From assembly GCA_025786725.1 (NCBI GenBank), contig JAHLTZ010000049.1, positions 57,474 through 121,473 on the forward strand: DNA of 64,000 nt, read 5' to 3'. This stretch comes from Syncephalis fuscata S228 (lineage: Eukaryota; Fungi; Zoopagomycota). The notes beneath the pieces were generated by a model. It was not told where the DNA came from, searched no databases, and saw only the letters and a program-made list of their open reading frames with translations. Positions 27,381-55,773 of the stretch are shown piece after piece; positions within the stretch are counted from its first letter, which is position 1, and the number at the start of each line of letters is the position of its first letter. A program made the translations under genes and the position numbers.

Positions 27381-28975
27381 TTGGCCCTTGCAACAACGTA
27401 TTACCTTTGTAATCGTTTTAATCTATATAGCTCTATTGTAATTGTGTGTGTATTGTTATATTTACACGGTTAATCTACCACTTATTATTATAACAGATAA
27501 GATAACATTTTACTTGGTTGTTTTATTAATGTTAATGCTGTTTAATTAACATTACAATTTATTAATAATTGGTATGATTTGATGGCCAATTGGTTATATT
27601 TAATAATATTTGTGCAATTGAGCTAGACATTCGTTCTAGTAAACAGGAATTGGGCGGTGAATGACGTCAATGGTGAAAATACTCATTATTATAATTTATT
27701 ATTCAGTACATATAGGTATATCCGTTCATCTATAACATTAGCAATCTGCCCTATACTATTATATATCATTATATGCTATATTAAATACATCTTATTTATT
27801 ATACTTCAGCACACTTCGCCCAGCACACTCATTGCGTTATATGCACTATAGCTTTAGCGCCGTTATTTATGCTTTTACATCGTGTATTTATTGTTACCGC
27901 TCTAGTTTAAAGAATGTATTTTAAATGATCAAGTATCACTTTACCCTAAAGTTATTCTAATGCTTTAGCTTTTGGTTTTTGCTTATACTTATTCTAAGGC
28001 TTGGAATACAGTGTGTTATTTAATTAGTATTGATCTGATAATAAACTTATTCCTTACCGGCACTAATTGTTACAGTTTAGCTACATCAAACTGAATAGCT
28101 TGTAAGATGCTATGTATAAATAACATGGACTAAGAACTTATTGTCATTATTGGTATTAAATACAGCTATCATTTCATAGTAAACAAATATTTACATGTAA
28201 TAGTTTTGTAATAGTTGTTGTTAATAATTAGTACTGATGTTTGATATATATTGTTTTGTGATCGTTTATATGCTATATTGACAAACCATATGATGTATTT
28301 CCTAGACACACTATCATAGCAATATAATTGCAATATTAGAATGGTAATAATGCAGAATTATTATCAGTAAATTATGCAATAAATGTATGTTTATATATAA
28401 AGTTGGTATTTATAAAACATATTAACCTACAACGCAATATATGAAATAAAGTAATAGTTTTCAAACTAAATACATAAACTATATTAAATTAAACTAAAGT
28501 ATGTATATAAAACCAAATCATTTTACAAAAAAATGATTACCAGTTTTAAAATATTCAGGCTAGATGCATTCTATTTGCAGTTCGTCATGCTATTCTAGTC
28601 AGTCCAAAGGTCTGTTATCTTTCAAACAACTGCTTCATTCGTTTAGTTCTATTTCCATCATGTCGACTCATAATACAACACACCGCCAAAGATATGGCAA
28701 ATTGTCGAGATATTCATCATATATTGTCGTTGAGTGAAGCCACTGCCATTATTGCTTTGGCACGCACTTGTAAAGTATTGTATAATTCTATTAATCGCAA
28801 TAGTTTATGGCTTCAACTATACCAGCGTGATTTTCCTCGTAATATCAATACCGATATTGACTGGTAAAATGGCAATTAGAACAAAAGCAACAAGTGGCAG
28901 GAACAGTAACTGGCACGGATAACGAAGTAGCAACAAATGTACTTGGTTTCAACTATACAACCAGCGTATGAACAC
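27381..28975 (+). repeat. 1.6-kb segmental duplication, inverted partner at 53484-55079
   Basis: ttggcccttgcaacaacg...atgaacac is the near-identical reverse complement of 53484-55079. The ORF track shows twin peptides MNDVNGENT(H/R)YYN at 27657(+) and 54803(-). Confidence 0.95.
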
Positions 28976-42052: not shown

Positions 42053-43289
42053 TTAAGTATACTTAAGTACAGTACTGATTCCGTAATGGTCTAATAGTTA
42101 TGATATAGTTAATATACGATTAGTTAAGCTTAGTTACCAGTAACTTACCCGATAATTGAGTGACCGGCATTCCTTCCAAATGCTCCTTAGCGATATAGAA
42201 TGGCTCAACTACCGTACTCTTTGGATCAGTTACATTAGGCTCCACTGAGGGCGGATCTTCACCACGACGCATTACAAGAATGTAATCCAGTCGTTGACGC
42301 CAGCCAAGTGCGTCGCTAGTAGTAAGTGTCGTTTCAATTGGAATAGGCTGACCACGCGCATCCAACTCCACCTGTCCATTGACATCACGTTTAACATCAC
42401 CAAATGTCTCGGGGTGCTTGCCCAAATGCTCAAACAACAAATCCTGTATAACAAATTTGTTCTCAGATTTATATACATTGCCGTCTTGGCGGGAACCTGG
42501 TACCAACGATGGATGAATGCCCTTACCGCTGAGCACACCCAGTGTAGCACGATATTCATCGCTGGATCCGCCCTTTTCTGCGGCTGCCGCATCATCCGGA
42601 CGACCATTAACGTTCAAGTCGCCTGCAAATATAATAAGGTCGTTGGTCGACTCATCCTGTAACTGGGCATCGATGAACCGGCGTGCTGCATATAGCTGTT
42701 TTAAGCGAATCTGCACAGCGCCATCTGACATGGCATAGCTACGTGTATACGACGACTGTAAATGCGTCGAAAATACTTGAAGGTATCGATTGCCAGCCAC
42801 ACGTAGCTTGGCATAGACAACGCCCTTCGCAGCCAGCCAATCGCTATCCGTGCCACGGTCGTAGGTCAATGAAGCATGGCGAATAATTGGGAACCGACTG
42901 ATAATCACCACACCACCATCAATACGCAGCGTAATAGCGCATTGTCGTGGCGACGATACCGAATAATGATAGCCTTTTTCGTGAGCTGCTTTAATTAGTT
43001 CAGAGCGTCGATTTGATCCAAAACCAAATAGTTCCTGGAACACAATAACGTCAAACCGATCGAGTTCATGGTCGATAAAATAGCGCAGTCGTTCGGATTT
43101 GTAGTCGTTGCCGTTTGAGTTAATGCCAGGTGGGCGCATATAAAAGTTATACTGAGCCAATCGAACTGTATAGTCAGCAAACGGATCCTTGGCAGGGCTA
43201 TCAGACGTAACGGTGACGCCAGACGTCGTAAGAGCAATGTCGGTTGCCACTTCACTGGCCACAACTTGATTATCGGCTTCGGCTGGCAT
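42053..43289 (-). CDS. Endonuclease/exonuclease/phosphatase-family enzyme, sphingomyelinase/IPC-phospholipase C-like, 2 exons
   Basis: YNFYMRPP...DVIVFQELF...IDGGVVIISRFPI...LAAKG...STHLQS...FAGDLN...RLDYI...QLS|DHYGI: all EEP catalytic motifs present. Start placed at MPAEADN; the ORF extends upstream to 43664. Confidence 0.85.
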
Positions 43290-43825
43290 TATACAGAAAA
43301 AATCGGACCAATAAAGCTTTAATGGGATATTTGTTGGATGAGCAGTAGTGGTTAAGCGAAGAAGCAAGGAGAAAGGACTGCTGTCAATAGGATGATTAGA
43401 CCAAGTAAATACGGTAGCTAATAGACAAACAAGCGCAAATAGAAGTAAAGCAGCGGGATAGCCAGTACAGTTACAGCGGAAAAAAGAACAAAGTGCTGCT
43501 GGATAATAAACGGTAGAGTTGAAAGTGTCGTTGTCAAGCTTAGAGTATTTTGAAAGAGGTGCTGTTGTGGTATTTGTTGTTGTTGTGTCCGTTGCTGTTG
43601 GTGGCTCGGGCACCTCAGTGGTTGGCTGGTTCAGCGGTAAAGCAGAAGGTGACTGTGGGAGCATGGGTGAAGAAGAGAAAACAACAAGAATAGATATTGA
43701 GTGACACGCGGATACTGTAAATCCCGCTTTTACTCTTTTCCCACTCTCTTGTTACGTGACTAGCTAGCTAGCTTGCTAACTATTGTTGATATCCTCGTTT
43801 AACAACTTGATCAATACTAACCACT

Positions 43826-44344
43826 ATGTCGTTCGCTTCTACTACTACTACTACTACTACTGTCACCACCACTGCCACGTCAACTTCTTCAAAAGTGGCC
43901 AATCCTCAGTATGTGCCACAGCCATATCAGGTGACCGGCTATCGATCTTTTGCGGATTTCTATCCATTTTATTTGGGCGAACATAATCATGCTACAAATC
44001 GTCGTTTACACTTGCTAGGTAAGCTATTTATCACAGCACTATAACTGCCTATCTAACTAACTCCAACGGATAGGCACGACTACAACGCTGACTCTCTTGG
44101 CTAGCATTCTAGTAACTGGTCGGTCGTTTTTCTATGCTCCATTGGCATTTGTGCCCGGCTATTTCTGTGCATGGGTAGGCCATTTTCTATTTGGTAAGTT
44201 TATTATGCATAGATGTTTATCTATAATAATGTATATAATATACTAGAGAAAAATAAGCCTGCTACATTCAAACATCCTTTTTACTCATTAATGGGTGATT
44301 TGCGTCTTTTTTACGAAGTCGTGACCAGCCAACGTGACATGTAG
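43826..44344 (+). CDS. DUF962 / Mpo1-like small membrane protein, 3 exons
   Basis: YRSFADFYPFYLGEH...NRRLHLL|GT...GYFCAWVGHFLF|EKNKPATFKHPFYSLMGD. Confidence 0.9.
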
Positions 44345-44574
44345 ACCACGATGTTACACGGCGTCTAAATTTGGTGTTTAATGGATACTATTTGACACAT
44401 AGTATTTATTGGAATCTAGCTAACATACTACTATGCTAATTAATGCTAGCTTTTACGTTCACTTGCATAACAATTGATGGCTATGAAAGTGAATATTTTA
44501 TACATAATAAAAAACAGTCGTCAATCTTAAATAACCTCTTTTTTATTAACCAATTACATTATGTGTATATGCAC

Positions 44575-47500
44575 TATAGCGTTAACGTTGTTACTTATAC
44601 AGTTCACCTTGTATATTCATATCATTTTATATAGATACATATGCAATTAAATACGATTTACCTGCAATTGTTGTCTGTTGTTTTAGCTTTATTGTCTATA
44701 AGATTCGACTTGTTTAGTTTATTCCGTTATTAAGCTACCCTGTAGCACGTTATTTAATTCCTTAAATTGTATATGCTATCATGTATATTTTTTATTAACA
44801 GCTTATTGGCAGTTTAATATGATTTAAATTAAAATACTATAATTTATAATATTTGTGCAATTTAACTGCATATTCTTTCTACTCAGTATGGAACTCGATG
44901 ATAAATTATATTAATAGTCGCATTATTATCATTGGCTTGCTATCATTACTATCCTATATGAATCTATCGAGTGTCAATAATACCATACCTGTAAATTCTT
45001 ACAGTACTGTGTTATTAATAGTTATATCGCCACTGTCCGCAGCTTTTCCTAAACCTTAATCATGATTTATTTTTTCTAAACTTGCTATTATTTACATACT
45101 TCATCATATGACATAAATACTATCAAATTTATGGTTGATAAAAATGAAATAATCCTGCAATAATTAGCTATAAGAAGACAAGCTAGCGCATGCTTTAATA
45201 AAGCAATAAATTCGCATATGCTTATATTATTTGTTTTATTCGTGTTTACGGCTCAATAAATTGAATGAAGCAAGAGTTATTAATAATAACGCCAGAGACA
45301 ATTGGACAACAGCTGTGAATAGCTTTGTTAAAGTCCTAATTTGCAACTTATCATTGATGCAAAATATCCATAAACTTTTGTGAGATTGCATTATTTGTTA
45401 TTTTTAATACACAAATCGACGTAAAATCCAGTATTTTTATTTTTAATAGTTATGATTGCAGCAAAAATATCCCGAATGTGCATAAAGTGCTACTTTTGAA
45501 TTTAAATATAAAACCATTGTGCCAATGCTATGACAGCAAGCGACATATTAAAATATGATTATGGCGTAATTAGGTGGTAAAAGGCAATGGCAAAGCAATA
45601 GTACTAATTTAATTAATAAATAGTTGCTGGCAATACATACGGCTTTACGTATAATGAAGCGACTGCATGATATTTTGTACAAGTATACTTGTGACATATA
45701 TATATGGCTGTTGATAAACTATATTGTAGTCTTATAGTGTGGCAATGCAATTGGCATGATACCACGCCAACAAATGCATAAAAACAACGGTTTTCTGTCG
45801 ACCATGGCCTATATACGTAAAAAATAGCATAATGATCGCAGGATTCGAGTTCTCCATGCCTAGATATACCGTCTGGTATGAATTATAAAACAATGATTTT
45901 GTGCAAAAAAATAGTCACAAATGTAATCTACGTTATTTTAATACGTTCAGTAAGCGTTGTTAATAATACATATAACTTTACATACAATGAAGCAAACTGT
46001 GTGATATTTTGCACAAATATATTTATGCCATATAGATAGCTATTGACAAAATATAGTGCACTTGTATTGCGTATTGATTCAATGGCTATGTCGATACGCT
46101 AATAAATGTACAAACACAACAGTTTTATACCGCTTATGGCCTATAGATTTAAAATACAACAAAATCATTACCGAATTCGAGTTTTTCATGTTTGGTTGTA
46201 CCGTTTGGTATAAAATATAGAACAAAATATTTTTAAAAAAATTAGTCGAAAATGCACTTACGTAAATATTAGTTAACGGAGATTAAGCTATTGTATATCT
46301 ATAGCATAAACTGCAACGGACATCAGTTTTATATATATTAACTTGCTGTTATGTTTGTGGCACTGTATAATGCTTTGGATTTACTTTAGACCAGTCTTAG
46401 TTCTTAGTGTTAATGCATTAAATCATAAAGCTTTAATTGCTTTGCTAATTATTTAACGTAAACTGCATTTTCGACTAATTTTTTTAAAAATATTTTGTTC
46501 TATATTTTATACCAAACGGTACAACCAAACATGAAAAACTCGAATTCGGTAATGATTTTGTTGTATTTTAAATCTATAGGCCATAAGCGGTATAAAACTG
46601 TTGTGTTTGTACATTTATTAGCGTATCGACATAGCCATTGAATCAATACGCAATACAAGTGCACTATATTTTGTCAATAGCTATCTATATGGCATAAATA
46701 TATTTGTGCAAAATATCACACAGTTTGCTTCATTGTATGTAAAGTTATATGTATTATTAACAACGCTTACTGAACGTATTAAAATAACGTAGATTACATT
46801 TGTGACTATTTTTTTGCACAAAATCATTGTTTTATAATTCATACCAGACGGTATATCTAGGCATGGAGAACTCGAATCCTGCGATCATTATGCTATTTTT
46901 TACGTATATAGGCCATGGTCGACAGAAAACCGTTGTTTTTATGCATTTGTTGGCGTGGTATCATGCCAATTGCATTGCCACACTATAAGACTACAATATA
47001 GTTTATCAACAGCCATATATATATGTCACAAGTATACTTGTACAAAATATCATGCAGTCGCTTCATTATACGTAAAGCCGTATGTATTGCCAGCAACTAT
47101 TTATTAATTAAATTAGTACTATTGCTTTGCCATTGCCTTTTACCACCTAATTACGCCATAATCATATTTTAATATGTCGCTTGCTGTCATAGCATTGGCA
47201 CAATGGTTTTATATTTAAATTCAAAAGTAGCACTTTATGCACATTCGGGATATTTTTGCTGCAATCATAACTATTAAAAATAAAAATACTGGATTTTACG
47301 TCGATTTTGTGTATTAAAAATAACAAATAATGCAATCTCACAAAAGTTTATGGATATTTTGCATCAATGATAAGTTGCAAATTAGGACTTTAACAAAGCT
47401 ATTCACAGCTGTTGTCCAATTGTCTCTGGCGTTATTATTAATAACTCTTGCTTCATTCAATTTATTGAGCCGTAAACACGAATAAAACAAATAATATAAG

Positions 47501-48145
47501 CATATGCGAATTTATTGCTTTATTAAAGCATGCGCTAGCTTGTCTTCTTATAGCTAATTATTGCAGGATTATTTCATTTTTATCAACCATAAATTTGATA
47601 GTATTTATGTCATATGATGAAGTATGTAAATAATAGCAAGTTTAGAAAAAATAAATCACGATTAAGGTTTAGGAAAAGCTGCGGACAGTGGCGATATAAC
47701 TATTAATAACACAGTACTGTAAGAATTTACAGGTATGGTATTATTGACACTCGATAGATTCATATAGGATAGTAATGATAGCAAGCCAATGATAATAATG
47801 CGACTATTAATATAATTTATCATCAGTTCCATACTGAGTAGAAAGAATATGCAGTTAAATTGCACAAATATTATAAATTATAGTATTTTAATTAAATCAT
47901 ATTAAACTGCCAATAAGCTGTTAATAAAAAATATACATGATAGCATATACAATTTAAGGAATTAAATAACGTGCTACAGGGTAGCTTAATAAGCGGAATA
48001 AACTAAACAAGTCGAATCTTATAGACAATAAAGCTAAAACAACAGACAACAATTGCAGGTAAATCGTATTTAATTGCATATGTATCTATATAAAATGATA
48101 TGAATATACAAGGTGAACTGTATAAGTAACGACGTTAACGCTATA
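44575..48145. mobile_element. Giant foldback palindrome, 3571 bp: arms 44575-46256 and 46464-48145, spacer 46257-46463; non-coding
   Basis: Begins tatagcgttaacgttgttacttatacagttcacc and ends ggtgaactgtataagtaacgacgttaacgctata. The arms are reverse complements with only a few substitutions or 1-bp indels seen. The palindrome is directly observed; mobility is inferred from the second copy. Confidence 0.85.
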
Positions 48146-48350
48146 TGTACATTGCTTAATTTTTACATAATACTTGTTATTATATTATACAATAAATGCT
48201 ATTTTAATTAAATATTAAACTGTACACTTGTGAACTAATACTTCTTTTTCTAATGTTAACAACTGTTTTTTCATACTCGAATTACTTTCAAGCTATTACG
48301 TTATTTTTACTAGTCAATATCGTAACAACAGCAATAAAGATTTATTACAT

Positions 48351-48363
48351 TGACGTCACGTGA
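48351..48363. promoter_or_regulatory. Overlapping CRE (TGACGTCA) and E-box (TCACGTGA) upstream of ETF-alpha
   Basis: tgacgtcacgtga about 150 nt before the ATG; motif match only. Confidence 0.45.
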
Positions 48364-48509
48364 TCTTCGGATAGTTGTACGTCATCTTACCGAAACTATT
48401 CCGAGTTCGTCCATAAGATCGCGCACGCGTAGCTTTTCACCCGACAATACACCGCTCTTTCTACTTACTGTGTCTCCTTTTCTTCTACTGCACCTGTTTA
48501 AACATCAAT

Positions 48510-49810
48510 ATGCTGACTATTACCACTCGCCAAGCAGGCCTTCGTGCATCTGCCTTGTTGGCACGACAGCGCTTTCTTAATCAGGTAGGATTAACTTTGG
48601 GCATACCACTGCCATCAATATTAATGCAATTATACCGGCAACACGCTATCTATCGCTCAATAGGCAGGCTTTATGACGTTCCGTGGCTATGCCTCGGCCA
48701 GTGATGTATCATCATTGGTGGTTATTGAACATAAAAACGACAAAATTGATCCATCAAGCTTAAATGCATTATCAGCGGCAGCCAAACTAGGCGGCACTGT
48801 GCATGCACTTGTGGCGGGCAGTGCGTCGGATGCTGTGGCGGATCAAGTTGCAAAACTAAAGCCAGTTAGCAAAGTTCTAGTGGCCTCCGATGCCGTTTAC
48901 GACCACGGCCTGCCTGAGAATAGCGCATCATTGATTGCTGCTGCACAGAAATCTGGCAATTATTCACATATTGTCGCTGCCCATAACGCATTTGGCAAAA
49001 ATATATTGCCTCGTGCAGCAGCTCTACTAGATGTGGCTCAAGTTTCGGACATCACGGGTATTACAAGTGCTGATACATTTACGCAATCTGTCTATTCAGG
49101 TAATTTATAACAAATGGCCATTTATTTCAACTACAATAAATCTAATAAACAATAGGTAATTTGATTGCTACGGTCAAGGCAAATGATCCCGTCAAAGTCT
49201 TTACTGTTCGCACCTCGGCCTTCCCGCCTACTGAAGCCCAAGATACGGCAGCGGCCAAAGAAGCAGCTCCTGAAGCAGAAAAAACAGGCAAGTTTATTTA
49301 CAACTATCAACAAATTCATATATATATATAATGCTATTTAATTAGACGCCACAAAATGGGTCAAAGAAAACATTATCAAAAACGATCGACCAGACTTAGG
49401 CACTGCGCGTGTTGTTGTCAGCGGTGGCCGTGGATTAAAGAATGGCGAAAACTTTAAAATACTATACGCTTTAGCTGATAAGATGGGCGGTGCAGGTATA
49501 GTACAAATTACACTAACAATTACTAGATAGTGCTAACATTAACGATATTAGTTGGTGCATCACGTGTTGCGGTCGATGAAGGCTACGTTGACAACAGTTT
49601 GCAAATTGGCCAAACAGGCAAGACAGTAGCACCAGATATTTACATTGCTGTGGGTATTTCTGGTGTAATTCAACACGTGGCCGGTATGAAAGATAGTAAG
49701 GCAATTGTAGCCATCAACTCAGATGGTGAGGCTCCCATTTTCGAGTTGGCCGATTACGGCATTGTAGGCGATTATTTAAGATTGTACCAGAATTGACTGA
49801 AAAAATCTAA
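48510..49810 (+). CDS. ETFA: Electron transfer flavoprotein alpha subunit, mitochondrial, 5 exons; 1-bp deletion near 49772
   Basis: Arg-rich presequence; [22 protein letters not shown]; [18 protein letters not shown]; VGASR...[11 protein letters not shown]...[15 protein letters not shown]. Restoring one T gives [14 protein letters not shown]. Confidence 0.96.
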
Positions 49811-49836
49811 ATATTGCATTGCTTTTATTAAACTTT

Positions 49837-50682
49837 TTAAAAAAACTTTACACCGTCCTCGCCAGAACCAGCAGAAAATATTTGAGCCTTATTTTGTTTT
49901 ACCAAAACATTAAGTGCTTTTCTTAGCATTCGTTCATCCAATTGATAAAAATCTAGTTATCTTGCAATTAATATTGGTAAATGGTAGTGCATGGATACTT
50001 GCCTTGTCCATCAACTGTAGCGCTATTTGATACTTCGTGAAGTGTAAGTACAGAGCCACGCTGTCCTGTCTCGGCAATCTATTATATGATTATTACATTG
50101 CCATTGTATTAATACAATTAATTAAACGATACAAAAGCTACTATTTGCCAATTACCCAGTTGTAAATCAATTGACCCCAAGCATCTGGTCGTCGCCAATA
50201 AATAAATACTTCAGTTTTGGCTGTGTCAATCCATGCTACATCGCCTGAATAGTAAATACAGTTATAAATGATTATATCTAATGTCTATGCACCATTCACT
50301 TACCTTTATTTACAGAAATCTCTATAATCTCTATTAGTAAATCGCGTGACAGCTGTCCTATAGTGTATAGTATTAGTATTAGTATTATTAATTGGCATTA
50401 ACAAATTAATGACTTGCGTTGTATGGCTGAGTTAACACACAATTCACTTGAGAGTAAATCGTCCAAACGTACACAAGTTTGTCGAGTGTGTTGTGCATAG
50501 GCTAGCAACAAGTCAGACCATATTTCAAGTTGACGTGTACGTGTTGCATCTGTAGGCTGTCGCCTGTGTCAGACACACGCAGTCTATTAGTATATTCTTT
50601 GTAGATACACTGTGACCTACGTATAAAAGGGTGGAAACTGATGAATGGCTGGAAAGTCAAATCTTTCCGCTGATTTACTCAT
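49837..50682 (-). CDS. VPS25: ESCRT-II subunit Vps25, 6 exons (absent from ORF track)
   Basis: MSKSAERFDFPAIHQFPPFYT|RQPTDATRTRQLEIWSDLLL...FIYWRRPDAWGQLIYNW...GSVLTLHE...KALNVLVKQNKAQIF...GVKFF*. Confidence 0.92.
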
Positions 50683-51005
50683 TGTTCTTAATAATACAAA
50701 ACTATTTTATATTGGCAAGGTAATAGGTGTTGACAACTCAGTATATATAGACCAGTATTTGTTGTTTTTTGTTATTTACTGGTTTTTGTACTCACGGTTA
50801 CAAGTACTGGTTATAAAATTGCCCCAAAAAAATGATAGTGAAACTGAGACTCGGAAGTGAGAAAGAGGTAGAGCCGAGCCTCAGTTTCACTGCAACTTAA
50901 TAGAATGTAGCTATTAAAAGCACCAGTTAATTAATATTAATTAATACAGACCACGTTTTACTTCTCTACTGATAATTTGTATTAATCCCAGTATTCACTT
51001 TTGTC

Positions 51006-51787
51006 ATGGCCAAAGCAACTGCAGGAAAAGCAGGAGGAGTCTCTGACCGTAACAGGTCAAAGAGAGGCGTCAGTAAAGCAACTCAAGGCTATTTACTGTT
51101 CTATAATTTTGCTTCATGCGCTGCATGGGCTTTCATACTAGTGCGTACCGTAAATCACTTTGCTGCCAATGGTTTGACAGCCGGTCTGCCAACGCTCTAC
51201 GCGAATATCGGTGACGACCTACGCTGGATACAAACGGCAGCTGCTCTTGAGATTATTCATAGTGCATTGGGCTTTGTGCGGTCACCACTGGGCACAACAC
51301 TAACTCAAGTGGCTAGTCGGCTCCTACTTGTCTGGGGCATTTGTGGCTTGTTCGATGTGCCCGAGGTACGTACTCATTGGGCATTCACCACAATGACCAT
51401 TGCTTGGAGTATTACAGAAGTGGTGCGCTATTTGTTTTACGCGCTTGGTCTGCTTGAAGTGTCATCCGACTTGCTGCTCTGGTGTCGGTAAGTACCACGC
51501 AATCTGCTGGCTATGATAGCTTCTTTGTCATTAATAATGAATTGATGTTAAATACATTTAGGTATACGTTCTTTTTAGTGCTTTATCCAATGGGAGCCGG
51601 CTCTGAAGCAATGCTTATCTACCAGTCGTTGTCGGCAGCAGATGCGCTCTATCCTAATTATGGCATTATTCTTCGTGGCATGCTTGCCATCTATCCACCT
51701 GGTCTAGGTGTTATGTATACACATATGCTGGGTCAACGCAAGCGCTATCTAGCAAGTCGTTCAAGTAGCCAGAAAAAGAGCCAATAA
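51006..51787 (+). CDS. PHS1: Very-long-chain 3-hydroxyacyl-CoA dehydratase (PTPLA/HACD), 2 exons
   Basis: YLLFYN; IQTAAALEIIHSALGFVRS; QVASR; AWSITEVVRYLFY; WCR|YTFFLVLYPMGAGSE; MYTHMLGQRKRYL. Confidence 0.95.
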
Positions 51788-53802: not shown

Positions 53803-55079
53803 GATGGAAATAGAACTAAACGAATGAAGCAGTTGTTTGAAAGATAACAGACCTTTGGACCGACTAGAATAGCATGACGAACTGCAAATAGAATGCATCT
53901 AGCCTGAATATTTTAAAACTGGTGATCATTTTTTTGTAAAATGATTTGGTTTTATATACATACTTTAGTTTAATTTAATATAGTTTATGTATTTAGTTTG
54001 AAAACTATTACTTTATTTCATATATTGCGTTGTAGGTTAATATGTTTTATAAATACCAACTTTATATATAAACATACATTTATTGCATAATTTACTGATA
54101 ATAATTCTGCATTATTACCATTCTAATATTGCAATTATATTGCTATGATAGTGTCTAGGAAATACATCATATGGTTTGTCAATATAGCATATAAACGATC
54201 ACAAAACAATATATATCAAACATCAGTACTAATTATTAACAACAACTATTACAAAACTATTACATGTAAATATTTGTTTACTATGAAATGATAGCTGTAT
54301 TTAATACCAATAATGACAATAAGTTCTTAGTCCATGTTATTTATACATAGCATCTTACAAGCTATTCAGTTTGATGTAGCTAAACTGTAACAATTAGTGC
54401 CGGTAAGGAATAAGTTTATTATCAGATCAATACTAATTAAATAACACACTGTATTCCAAGCCTTAGGATAAGTATAAGCAAAAACCAAAAGCTAAAGCAT
54501 TAGAATAACTTTAGGGTAAAGTGATACTTGATCATTTAAAATACATTCTTTAAACTAGAGCGGTAACAATAAATACACGATGTAAAAGCATAAATAACGG
54601 CGCTAAAGCTATAGTGCATATAACGCAATGAGTGTGCTGGGCGAAGTGTGCTGAAGTATAATAAATAAGATGTATTTAATATAGCATATAATGATATATA
54701 ATAGTATAGGGCAGATTGCTAATGTTATAGATGAACGGATATACCTATATGTACTGAATAATAAATTATAATAACGAGTATTTTCACCATTGACGTCATT
54801 CACCGCCCAATTCCTGTTTACTAGAACGAATGTCTAGCTCAATTGCACAAATATTATTAAATATAACCAATTGGCCATCAAATCATACCAATTACTAATA
54901 AATTGTAATGTTAATTAAATAGCATTAACATTAATAAAACAACCAAGTAAAATGTTATCTTATCTGTTATAATAATAAGTGGTAGATTAACCGTGTAAAT
55001 ATAACAATACACACACAATTACAATAGAGCTATATAGATTAAAACGATTACAAAGGTAATACGTTGTTGCAAGGGCCAA
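53484..55079 (-). repeat. 1.6-kb segmental duplication, inverted partner of 27381-28975
   Basis: Near-identical reverse complement of 27381-28975. Confidence 0.95.
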
Positions 55080-55773
55080 ACTGGATATAAATAAAATAAC
55101 TTGTTTATTTAATTAATTTGCAAACTATTACTTTACTTTCTACATTGAGTAATCTGCTGAACTTTATTATAAAGACTTTATCCTATTACCTAAGTACTCT
55201 ACTAATGACATTTTTGTATCGTATCATTACAAATACAATCTATTAATATTAACATTGTATAATGTTACATCGATCTTCCTATTATCATATTGCTTTCTCT
55301 GGATCGGCACTGTAACTGGCATCAACGTATTTGATTAATCATTAGTTTGCATTATCCAAATACGTGTCCTACAAATCTATACCTTAAGTCTACATTATTT
55401 TCCAATATTCGTACTAACTATCGTTAAATTTTATTGAACTAATATGCATTGTTCATATACGCAAAGGCTAGCACGCAAACATCTGTGAGTGTTTCTGTCA
55501 CCATCTATTTAGGAATGAACGAATAACTAATACTAGACTACTATTTTTGTGAACGAAACTGCTAAATAATCAAATTTTGCTTGCCATCGCCTTGCTATAT
55601 ATATTTGAAGCTAACTGTTAGTATCTTTATTCACATTATGTTGTTATAGTTTGTTTTCAAACAATAATACTTGTAAGTGAATTATTATTGCTAGCTATCG
55701 ATCAATTTATTAACTAGTGTAATTAAATTTATATTATAAATGGCTACTATTTGATTATAATAGTGCCGGATAT

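Follow-up and report, generated by a model that had tools for sequence, protein, structure and literature searches.

A near-perfect palindrome between two housekeeping genes of Syncephalis fuscata is probably one copy of an old, gene-less repeat family of foldback shape

The window analysed here is a 64,000-nt stretch of DNA from Syncephalis fuscata S228 and lies on contig C316 of a 29.4-Mb assembly of 371 contigs. A long palindrome fills most of the interval between an Mpo1-like gene and the gene for electron transfer flavoprotein alpha (ETFA), and its location between two genes agreed with the preliminary description of this DNA. It is situated 530 bp upstream of ETFA, and its distances to the flanking housekeeping genes are 200-530 bp. 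The coordinates of all features are given in Table 1.

Table 1. Features of the palindrome, its neighbours and the related copy in the window (positions count from the first letter of the window)
Feature	Position	Strand	Basis or remark
Partial second copy	20436..21732	-	reverse complement of 46000-47285, 97.5% over 1298 nt
Older family remnant	21733..21894	.	79% to the 44575-48145 element, 66-69% to other copies
Left neighbour, Mpo1-like gene with introns	43826..44344	+	end coordinate approximate; syntenic in Thamnocephalis
Left arm	44575..46259	+	99.6% to reverse complement of 46461-48145
Outermost 215 nt, left arm	44575..44789	+	locus-specific, outside family arm boundary
Outer arm module 'A'	44790..45386	+	mirror copy ~47334-47930
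Core arm, family-wide	45387..46259	+	mirror copy 46461-47333
Spacer, asymmetric, 201 nt	46260..46460	.	homologous spacers elsewhere in genome
Right arm	46461..48145	-	inverted blocks, global arm alignment
Outermost 215 nt, right arm	47931..48145	-	inverted copy of 44575-44789
Right neighbour, electron transfer flavoprotein alpha (ETFA) with introns	48673..49796	+	syntenic in Thamnocephalis and metagenome relative

Each arm of the palindrome is 1685 nt long, and the identity of 99.6% was obtained by global alignment of one arm with the reverse complement of the other. A repeat search recovered five collinear inverted blocks between the arms (847, 519, 152, 107 and 72 nt), with a complementarity of 98-100%. 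The arms differ by 2 substitutions (44589/48131 and 45062/47659) and 4 one-base indels (44726, 44826, 44896 and 45412), so that the two substitutions and about five indels counted earlier were essentially right; a further mismatch at 46257/46463 adjoins the spacer. Outside 44575 and 48145, the arm identity fell at once to the background in the global alignment. All six differences are located in the outer half of the arm, and either a recent inner conversion tract or a consensus polishing that blended the arms fits this distribution. The core arm contains two diverged tandem units of ~332 nt (~45570-46255), which are 68% alike. On either side, the arm continues in decayed form into the outer ~40 nt of the spacer, and the self-complementarity of the spacer is weak (z about 2.8). 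An inverted repeat inside a single arm, between the tip and ~600-800, was not significant in this copy.

No open reading frame longer than 68 aa was found in the palindrome, and eight of its open reading frames had no Pfam match. The palindrome matched nothing in Rfam or in a tRNA search with ARAGORN, and neither of these searches supported the idea that the 332-nt units resemble tRNAs or SINEs. Nothing pointed to a cellular function, whether coding or through a structured RNA, and the near-perfect, non-coding nature of the palindrome was confirmed by the inverted blocks, the arm alignment and the empty Pfam, Rfam and tRNA searches. The element was also rejected as a MITE, a class of high-copy elements under ~800 bp with short terminal inverted repeats and a target-site duplication, since it measures 3.57 kb, has 1.68-kb arms and shows no target duplication.

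To place the palindrome in its gene context, the matching interval was compared in two relatives. Thamnocephalis has the EEP, Mpo1, ETF-alpha, ESCRT-II and PTPLA genes in matching order, and its Mpo1-ETFA gap is 332 bp. The corresponding gap of S. fuscata is ~4.3 kb, and the palindrome takes up 3.57 kb of it. Therefore, the palindrome is a lineage-specific addition to this interval. In the metagenome (JGI) relative, 1.1 kb separates ETFA from EEP. The palindrome was absent from the matching interval in both relatives, in which the order of the genes is conserved. At a protein identity of 62-69%, these relatives are too distant for an empty site to be compared at the nucleotide level, and they set only a loose limit on the date of arrival.

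When a single arm was used as the query against the genome, at least 66 matching places were obtained, nearly all of them to arm positions ~770-1685 and arranged as inverted pairs ~200 nt apart. The core arm matched at least 34 loci, and the spacer alone matched at least about 40 loci at 65-84% identity. The union of core-arm and spacer matches comprised at least 67 distinct loci, a lower bound that includes some redundant contigs. The recurrent part is the inner half of each arm, with its two ~332-nt units, together with the spacer. The twenty-odd loci inspected were palindromes, with arms of 380-1430 nt that are 93-99% alike and spacers of 160-210 nt. Copies are often truncated or rearranged, and some contigs hold clusters of copies. 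The only copy with a large insert between its arms is that on contig C224, where the insert is 2 kb long and carries a CCHC-knuckle open reading frame and no transposase. Many BLAST matches started at arm position ~860, which suggested a core boundary there; this was a hit-edge artefact, and the homology extends outward in most copies. Beyond the assembly, a metagenome search with a two-motif pattern that recovers ~40% of the known copies gave 4 matches, all unrelated and non-palindromic. Full-text searches of the literature yielded no report of such foldback or palindromic repeats from Syncephalis or from Zoopagomycota at large.

Fold-back chimeric long reads can yield near-perfect palindromes, and the one-base indels between the arms resemble residual read errors. 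The palindrome could accordingly be a product of assembly or polishing, either a chimeric fold-back read or a pair of collapsed arms. However, unique and syntenic genes stand on both flanks, the asymmetric spacer is homologous to the spacers at ~40 other loci, and other copies share the design with an arm divergence of 1-7%, all of which makes an artefact very improbable.

Inverted repeats of this kind are also known from fungal centromeres. In Komagataella phaffii, each chromosome has a single centromere, which binds CENP-A and consists of inverted repeats of ~2 kb on either side of a ~1-kb centre; both orientations of this centre occur, and the S. fuscata family resembles such a layout. A centromere of the Komagataella or Candida tropicalis type would agree with the inverted arms, the short flipping centre and the clusters of copies on some contigs. 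Nevertheless, the family occupies at least 67 loci in 29 Mb and adjoins ordinary genes, the present element is just 3.6 kb long, and it lies 200-530 bp from housekeeping genes and not in a gene-poor region. We regard a centromeric role as hardly credible.

The likeness of the arms within a copy was distinctly different from the likeness between copies. Within one copy, the arms are 93-99.6% identical, the palindrome at 44575-48145 included, and the high identity ends in a sharp drop. Between loci, the core identity is ~62-76% with a median of 68% and a Ts/Tv of 1.34 (alignment of 14 arms). Among the matches listed, identity to the present element reaches 80% in the nearest independent copy and is ~70% in most. 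Therefore, the family is old, and the arm identity is no measure of its age. RIP-like hypermutation was rejected as the source of the 30% divergence, the Ts/Tv being merely 1.34. Several apparent copies are segmental duplicates with common flanks; the near-identical copies on C305, C97 and C361 share their flanks in this way and do not count as independent insertions.

The conservation is flat along the arms, no strongly conserved block was seen, and the spacer diverges as quickly as the arms. These observations bear on the possibility that the element is a functional inverted repeat under selection, whether a long-hairpin RNA or siRNA locus or one with another role (regulatory, origin). The palindrome and its ~200-nt spacer have been retained across ~30% divergence at dozens of loci, the genome encodes three Piwi-domain genes, and the element is positioned upstream of ETFA, each of which would suit a function. 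Nevertheless, selection on such a function is hard to reconcile with flat arm conservation and with a spacer that evolves as quickly as the arms, and the frequent truncation or rearrangement of copies and the absence of an Rfam match likewise count against it. A functional locus is thus judged improbable.

To determine how old copies could keep near-identical arms, two sets of segmental duplicates, whose flanks are 95-99% alike, were used. In the C268/C341 pair, 11 sites were common to both arms of one copy, compared to 0 in the control partition; both copies also retained 16 arm-specific differences of older date. In the triplet C24a, C24b and C351, 7 sites were common to both arms of a single copy, and the nearest relative of each arm was the other arm of its own copy. 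Sites shared by both arms in this way demonstrate that arm-to-arm gene conversion took place after the duplications. Furthermore, the palindrome of the triplet aligns in reverse between copies, and the flanks (96-99%) align forward. Therefore, the spacer flipped between copies, and in the duplicated copies it is found in both orientations. The family thus displays the marks of concerted evolution, namely an arm likeness that exceeds the between-copy likeness, a spacer in both orientations and a shifting edge of the identical zone. The preliminary description had regarded the family as young. That view does not hold, because copies at different loci are only ~65-73% alike and the near-identity of arms is explained by the conversion found in duplicated copies.

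The ends of the palindrome were compared with those of other copies. The tips (TATAGCGTTAACG...) were found at no other locus among the matches listed. Nine other loci become homologous to the arm only from arm position 215-229 inward (~44790 in the window). The outer 215 nt are collinear with no other copy, and the two arms are ~99% alike there. The first ~150 nt of this outer part show a weak resemblance (64-70%) to a repeat fragment that also occurs in other settings; on contig C79, such a fragment lies within 590-nt inverted repeats around an OYE-like gene. Next inward lies module 'A'; in the C24 and C68 copies, one arm is collinear with it at 59-66%. The long copies on C1 and C350 have a different outer module, 'B', whose tip is sharply conserved at at least 13 loci with unrelated flanks. 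The C68 copy has different outer modules on its two sides, B and A, so the family is not inherently symmetrical in its outer parts. A resemblance by eye of the tips and flanks of the present copy to the 'B' tip was not sustained, since a profile search gave no match at the flanks.

Moreover, the edge of the identical zone varies relative to the modules. At C350, significant matches to the 'B' tip extend 19 and 38 nt past the 98%-identical zone on the two sides, and at C1 the identical zone begins 6-9 nt outside the 'B' tip. Together with the 215-nt offset at the present copy, these offsets show that the limits of the identical zone are independent of where the repeat units end. In a shuffle test, arm homology just outside the palindrome was significant for the C24 copies only, and not at the present locus, at C1 or at C350.

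The copies examined, including C1, C350 and C24, showed no consistent target-site duplication, although an old duplication could have decayed. The 5-bp duplication proposed earlier for this locus (tgcac/tgtac) matches at 4 of 5 positions only and gains no support from other copies. Shared termini had also been expected of the family; as no other locus has these tips among the matches listed, the reading as a simple transposon with these ends fails, and the palindrome does not terminate in transposon ends. Among the matches listed, no coding region was framed by an inverted pair of end modules, and no transposase partner was seen.

The outer 215 nt could have arisen in another way, if a short inverted repeat was already present and a family member with ends at ~44790 and 47930 inserted into its centre; the two halves of this older repeat would then form the outer sequence as a split target. 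Such an event would account for outer sequences collinear with no other copy, and the resemblance of the first ~150 nt to a fragment that forms inverted pairs elsewhere, e.g. on C79, also speaks for it. However, no uninterrupted palindrome of the outer sequence was found elsewhere, and the inverted-repeat boundaries on C79 differ from those at 44575-48145. In addition, the outer 215 nt are ~99% alike in an old family, so that conversion would still be needed. We consider this origin unlikely; it is the main alternative to an outward spread of the palindrome and could equally yield the 215-nt extension.

The second partial copy that had been noticed 25 kb away was located at 20436-21732. It is a single contiguous piece that runs across the spacer, with 825 nt from one arm and 260 nt from the other, and it is truncated at one end. 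At its other end, a 573-nt deletion breaks the homology, and a 79% family remnant follows. The second copy is best read as an older remnant that may have been overwritten by ectopic conversion with the palindrome, or vice versa; a fresh insertion that came to lie beside an old remnant by chance is less likely.

With these data, the proposal of a young non-autonomous foldback transposon that is still mobile and has 1.68-kb terminal inverted repeats can be weighed. The foldback-like shape with its modular, near-perfect arms, the 98% partial copy 25 kb off and the absence of the element from the orthologous interval in relatives would all be expected of such an element, and the 'B' tip is conserved at unrelated flanks as transposon ends are. 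However, among the matches listed no locus has the same tips and the nearest independent copies stand at the 80% and ~70% given above; the family boundary is located 215 nt inward of the tips, and target-site duplications are missing here and at C1, C350 and C24. The arm identity is accounted for by conversion, the near-identical partial copy lies on a remnant of greater age, and a coding partner was not seen. A young transposon is therefore improbable for this locus. Of the foldback family that had been proposed, the non-coding and dispersed character, the foldback shape and the modular arms stand, whereas its youth, its shared termini and its target duplication do not.

We consider it probable that the palindrome is one copy of an old, gene-less, foldback-shaped family whose arms are homogenised by conversion. 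A family member comprises a conserved asymmetric centre of ~200 nt, inverted core arms made of ~332-nt units and variable outer modules. The copy described here may have entered, or arisen in, the Mpo1-ETFA interval after the split from Thamnocephalis. Repeated arm-to-arm gene conversion since then would keep the arms nearly identical, and recombination between the arms would also flip the spacer. Conversion tracts that move outward or inward would shift the edge of the identical zone. At this locus, we infer that the palindrome spread outward 215 nt past the family boundary into neighbouring DNA, by conversion or break repair; such a spread would leave unique tips and no target-site duplication.

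The original dispersal of the family by transposition is plausible, as the tip of outer module 'B' is conserved at many unrelated sites. The searches for evidence of dispersal found no target-site duplication, transposase partner or insertion polymorphism. Palindromes with spacers are far less fragile than those without, and the ~200-nt spacer present in every copy probably accounts for the tolerance of these palindromes. It is a long shot, but the family and the many other inverted repeats of this genome that cage genes could reflect something other than decayed transposons, either a lineage-specific process that makes and maintains palindromes, or loci kept for hairpin RNA. Such a process could, e.g., be a mobile element copied via a fold-back intermediate, so that its copies are born with perfect arms and without a target duplication. 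As for hairpin RNA, palindromic loci could be the sources of long hairpins for RNA interference in this mycoparasite.

The favoured reading, a converted foldback-shaped family, was compared with known systems. The palindrome has the long inverted arms, the internal tandem repeats and the scarcity of coding sequence by which foldback elements are recognised. Drosophila Foldback (FB) elements have conserved termini, 9-bp target duplications, the coding partner NOF and repeat units of 10-31 bp. By description only, FB and the S. fuscata family are alike in their long, tandem-built inverted arms of variable length. Most FB copies are also described as non-coding, with a central loop that is variable or short, whereas the ~200-nt centre of the S. 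fuscata family is conserved family-wide. Unlike FB, the present palindrome has locus-unique tips and a 332-nt unit, and neither a target duplication nor a coding partner was found.

Galileo, of the P superfamily, has 7-bp target duplications, a P-like transposase in its full copies and shared termini. It resembles the present case in its terminal inverted repeats of up to 1.2 kb, its many non-autonomous copies and its role in rearrangements; however, 7-bp duplications, a P-like transposase and shared termini were not found for the S. fuscata palindrome. In the palindromes of the primate Y chromosome and the inverted repeats of plastids, arm-to-arm conversion holds the arms ~99-100% identical in the long term. 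These systems share with the family a flipping spacer and boundaries that move in and out ('ebb and flow'). Nevertheless, they are single, large and gene-bearing, whereas the S. fuscata family is dispersed, gene-less and 2-3.6 kb in size. The family is best filed as a new instance of foldback-like palindromic repeats under concerted evolution.

The near-perfect arms are no clock for palindromic repeats. In a family that has diverged by ~30% and whose arms are kept 99% alike by conversion, dating by arm identity would go badly wrong. Annotators should mask the element as repetitive and should not take it for regulatory DNA of ETFA. The family was found in no paper searched, and Zoopagomycota is a little-studied fungal phylum. 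Since conversion, spacer flipping and moving boundaries occur here on a small, multi-copy scale, the family could suit studies of how palindromes are maintained. If transcribed, the palindrome would give a 1.7-kb hairpin RNA and would be a candidate source of endogenous hairpin siRNA; with three Piwi-domain (Argonaute) genes present, a read-through transcript could feed RNA interference in S. fuscata.

The gene order EEP, Mpo1, ETF-alpha, ESCRT-II and PTPLA around the palindrome (window 42120-51500) was kept in the Thamnocephalis contig KZ992460.1, and was common to two genera, Syncephalis and Thamnocephalis.

Module 'B', the outer arm module of other family copies, was also found outside palindromes. 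Three significant matches to its conserved tip in the window adjoined the F-box genes and had no core palindrome close by; module 'B' is therefore an independent repeat that occurs widely. Since its first bases are TG, a solo LTR is one possibility for this module. In some family copies (on contigs C97, C2 and C361), the core palindrome was flanked by direct, not inverted, 'B' modules, which were 72-81% identical; they could represent tandem elements or an LTR-like arrangement. The F-box gene region of the window also harbored an inverted duplication of 944 nt (99% identity, 26 kb between the copies), with further blocks of 368 and 345 nt adjoining.

Inverted repeats with enclosed ORFs were observed elsewhere in the genome. 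In a 4.4-kb unit of contig C79, inverted repeats of approximately 590 nt each, 90% identical and akin to the outer part of the window palindrome's arms (44575-48145), surrounded an Old-Yellow-Enzyme-like ORF of 291 aa. This unit is a further example of a gene caged by inverted repeats in the S. fuscata genome. A family copy on contig C224 had approximately 2 kb between its arms instead of 200 nt; this insert contained a 96-aa ORF with a gag-like CCHC zinc knuckle, and no transposase.

The genome contained three Piwi-domain (Argonaute) genes. The six-frame matches of two of them included an in-frame TAG, which may mark an intron.

Locations of the repeat modules, duplications and Piwi-domain genes
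Feature	Location	Orientation	Remark
'B' tip match	window 24560-24672	(-)	significant, within E 1e-11 to 1e-17
'B' tip match	window 27890-28009	(+)	significant, within E 1e-11 to 1e-17
'B' tip match	window 54451-54570	(-)	significant, within E 1e-11 to 1e-17
Direct 'B' modules	G000:C97 (1-3400) 456-567 and 2136-2244	same	around core palindrome
944-nt duplication	window 27366-28309 and 54151-55094	inverted	
4.4-kb unit	G000:C79:522064-526481		
Family copy with insert	G000:C224:150593-157491		
Piwi-domain gene	G000:C35:146565		
Piwi-domain gene	G000:C350:743214		
Piwi-domain gene	G000:C1:104122		
Segmental duplicate set	C305 / C97 / C361		
Segmental duplicate set	C24:38k / C24:57k / C351		

Many of the family 'copies' were segmental duplicates of several kb with flanks 95-99% identical, among which the number of 332-nt units varied. 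The family's recent growth in copy number has come about by duplication of surrounding DNA.
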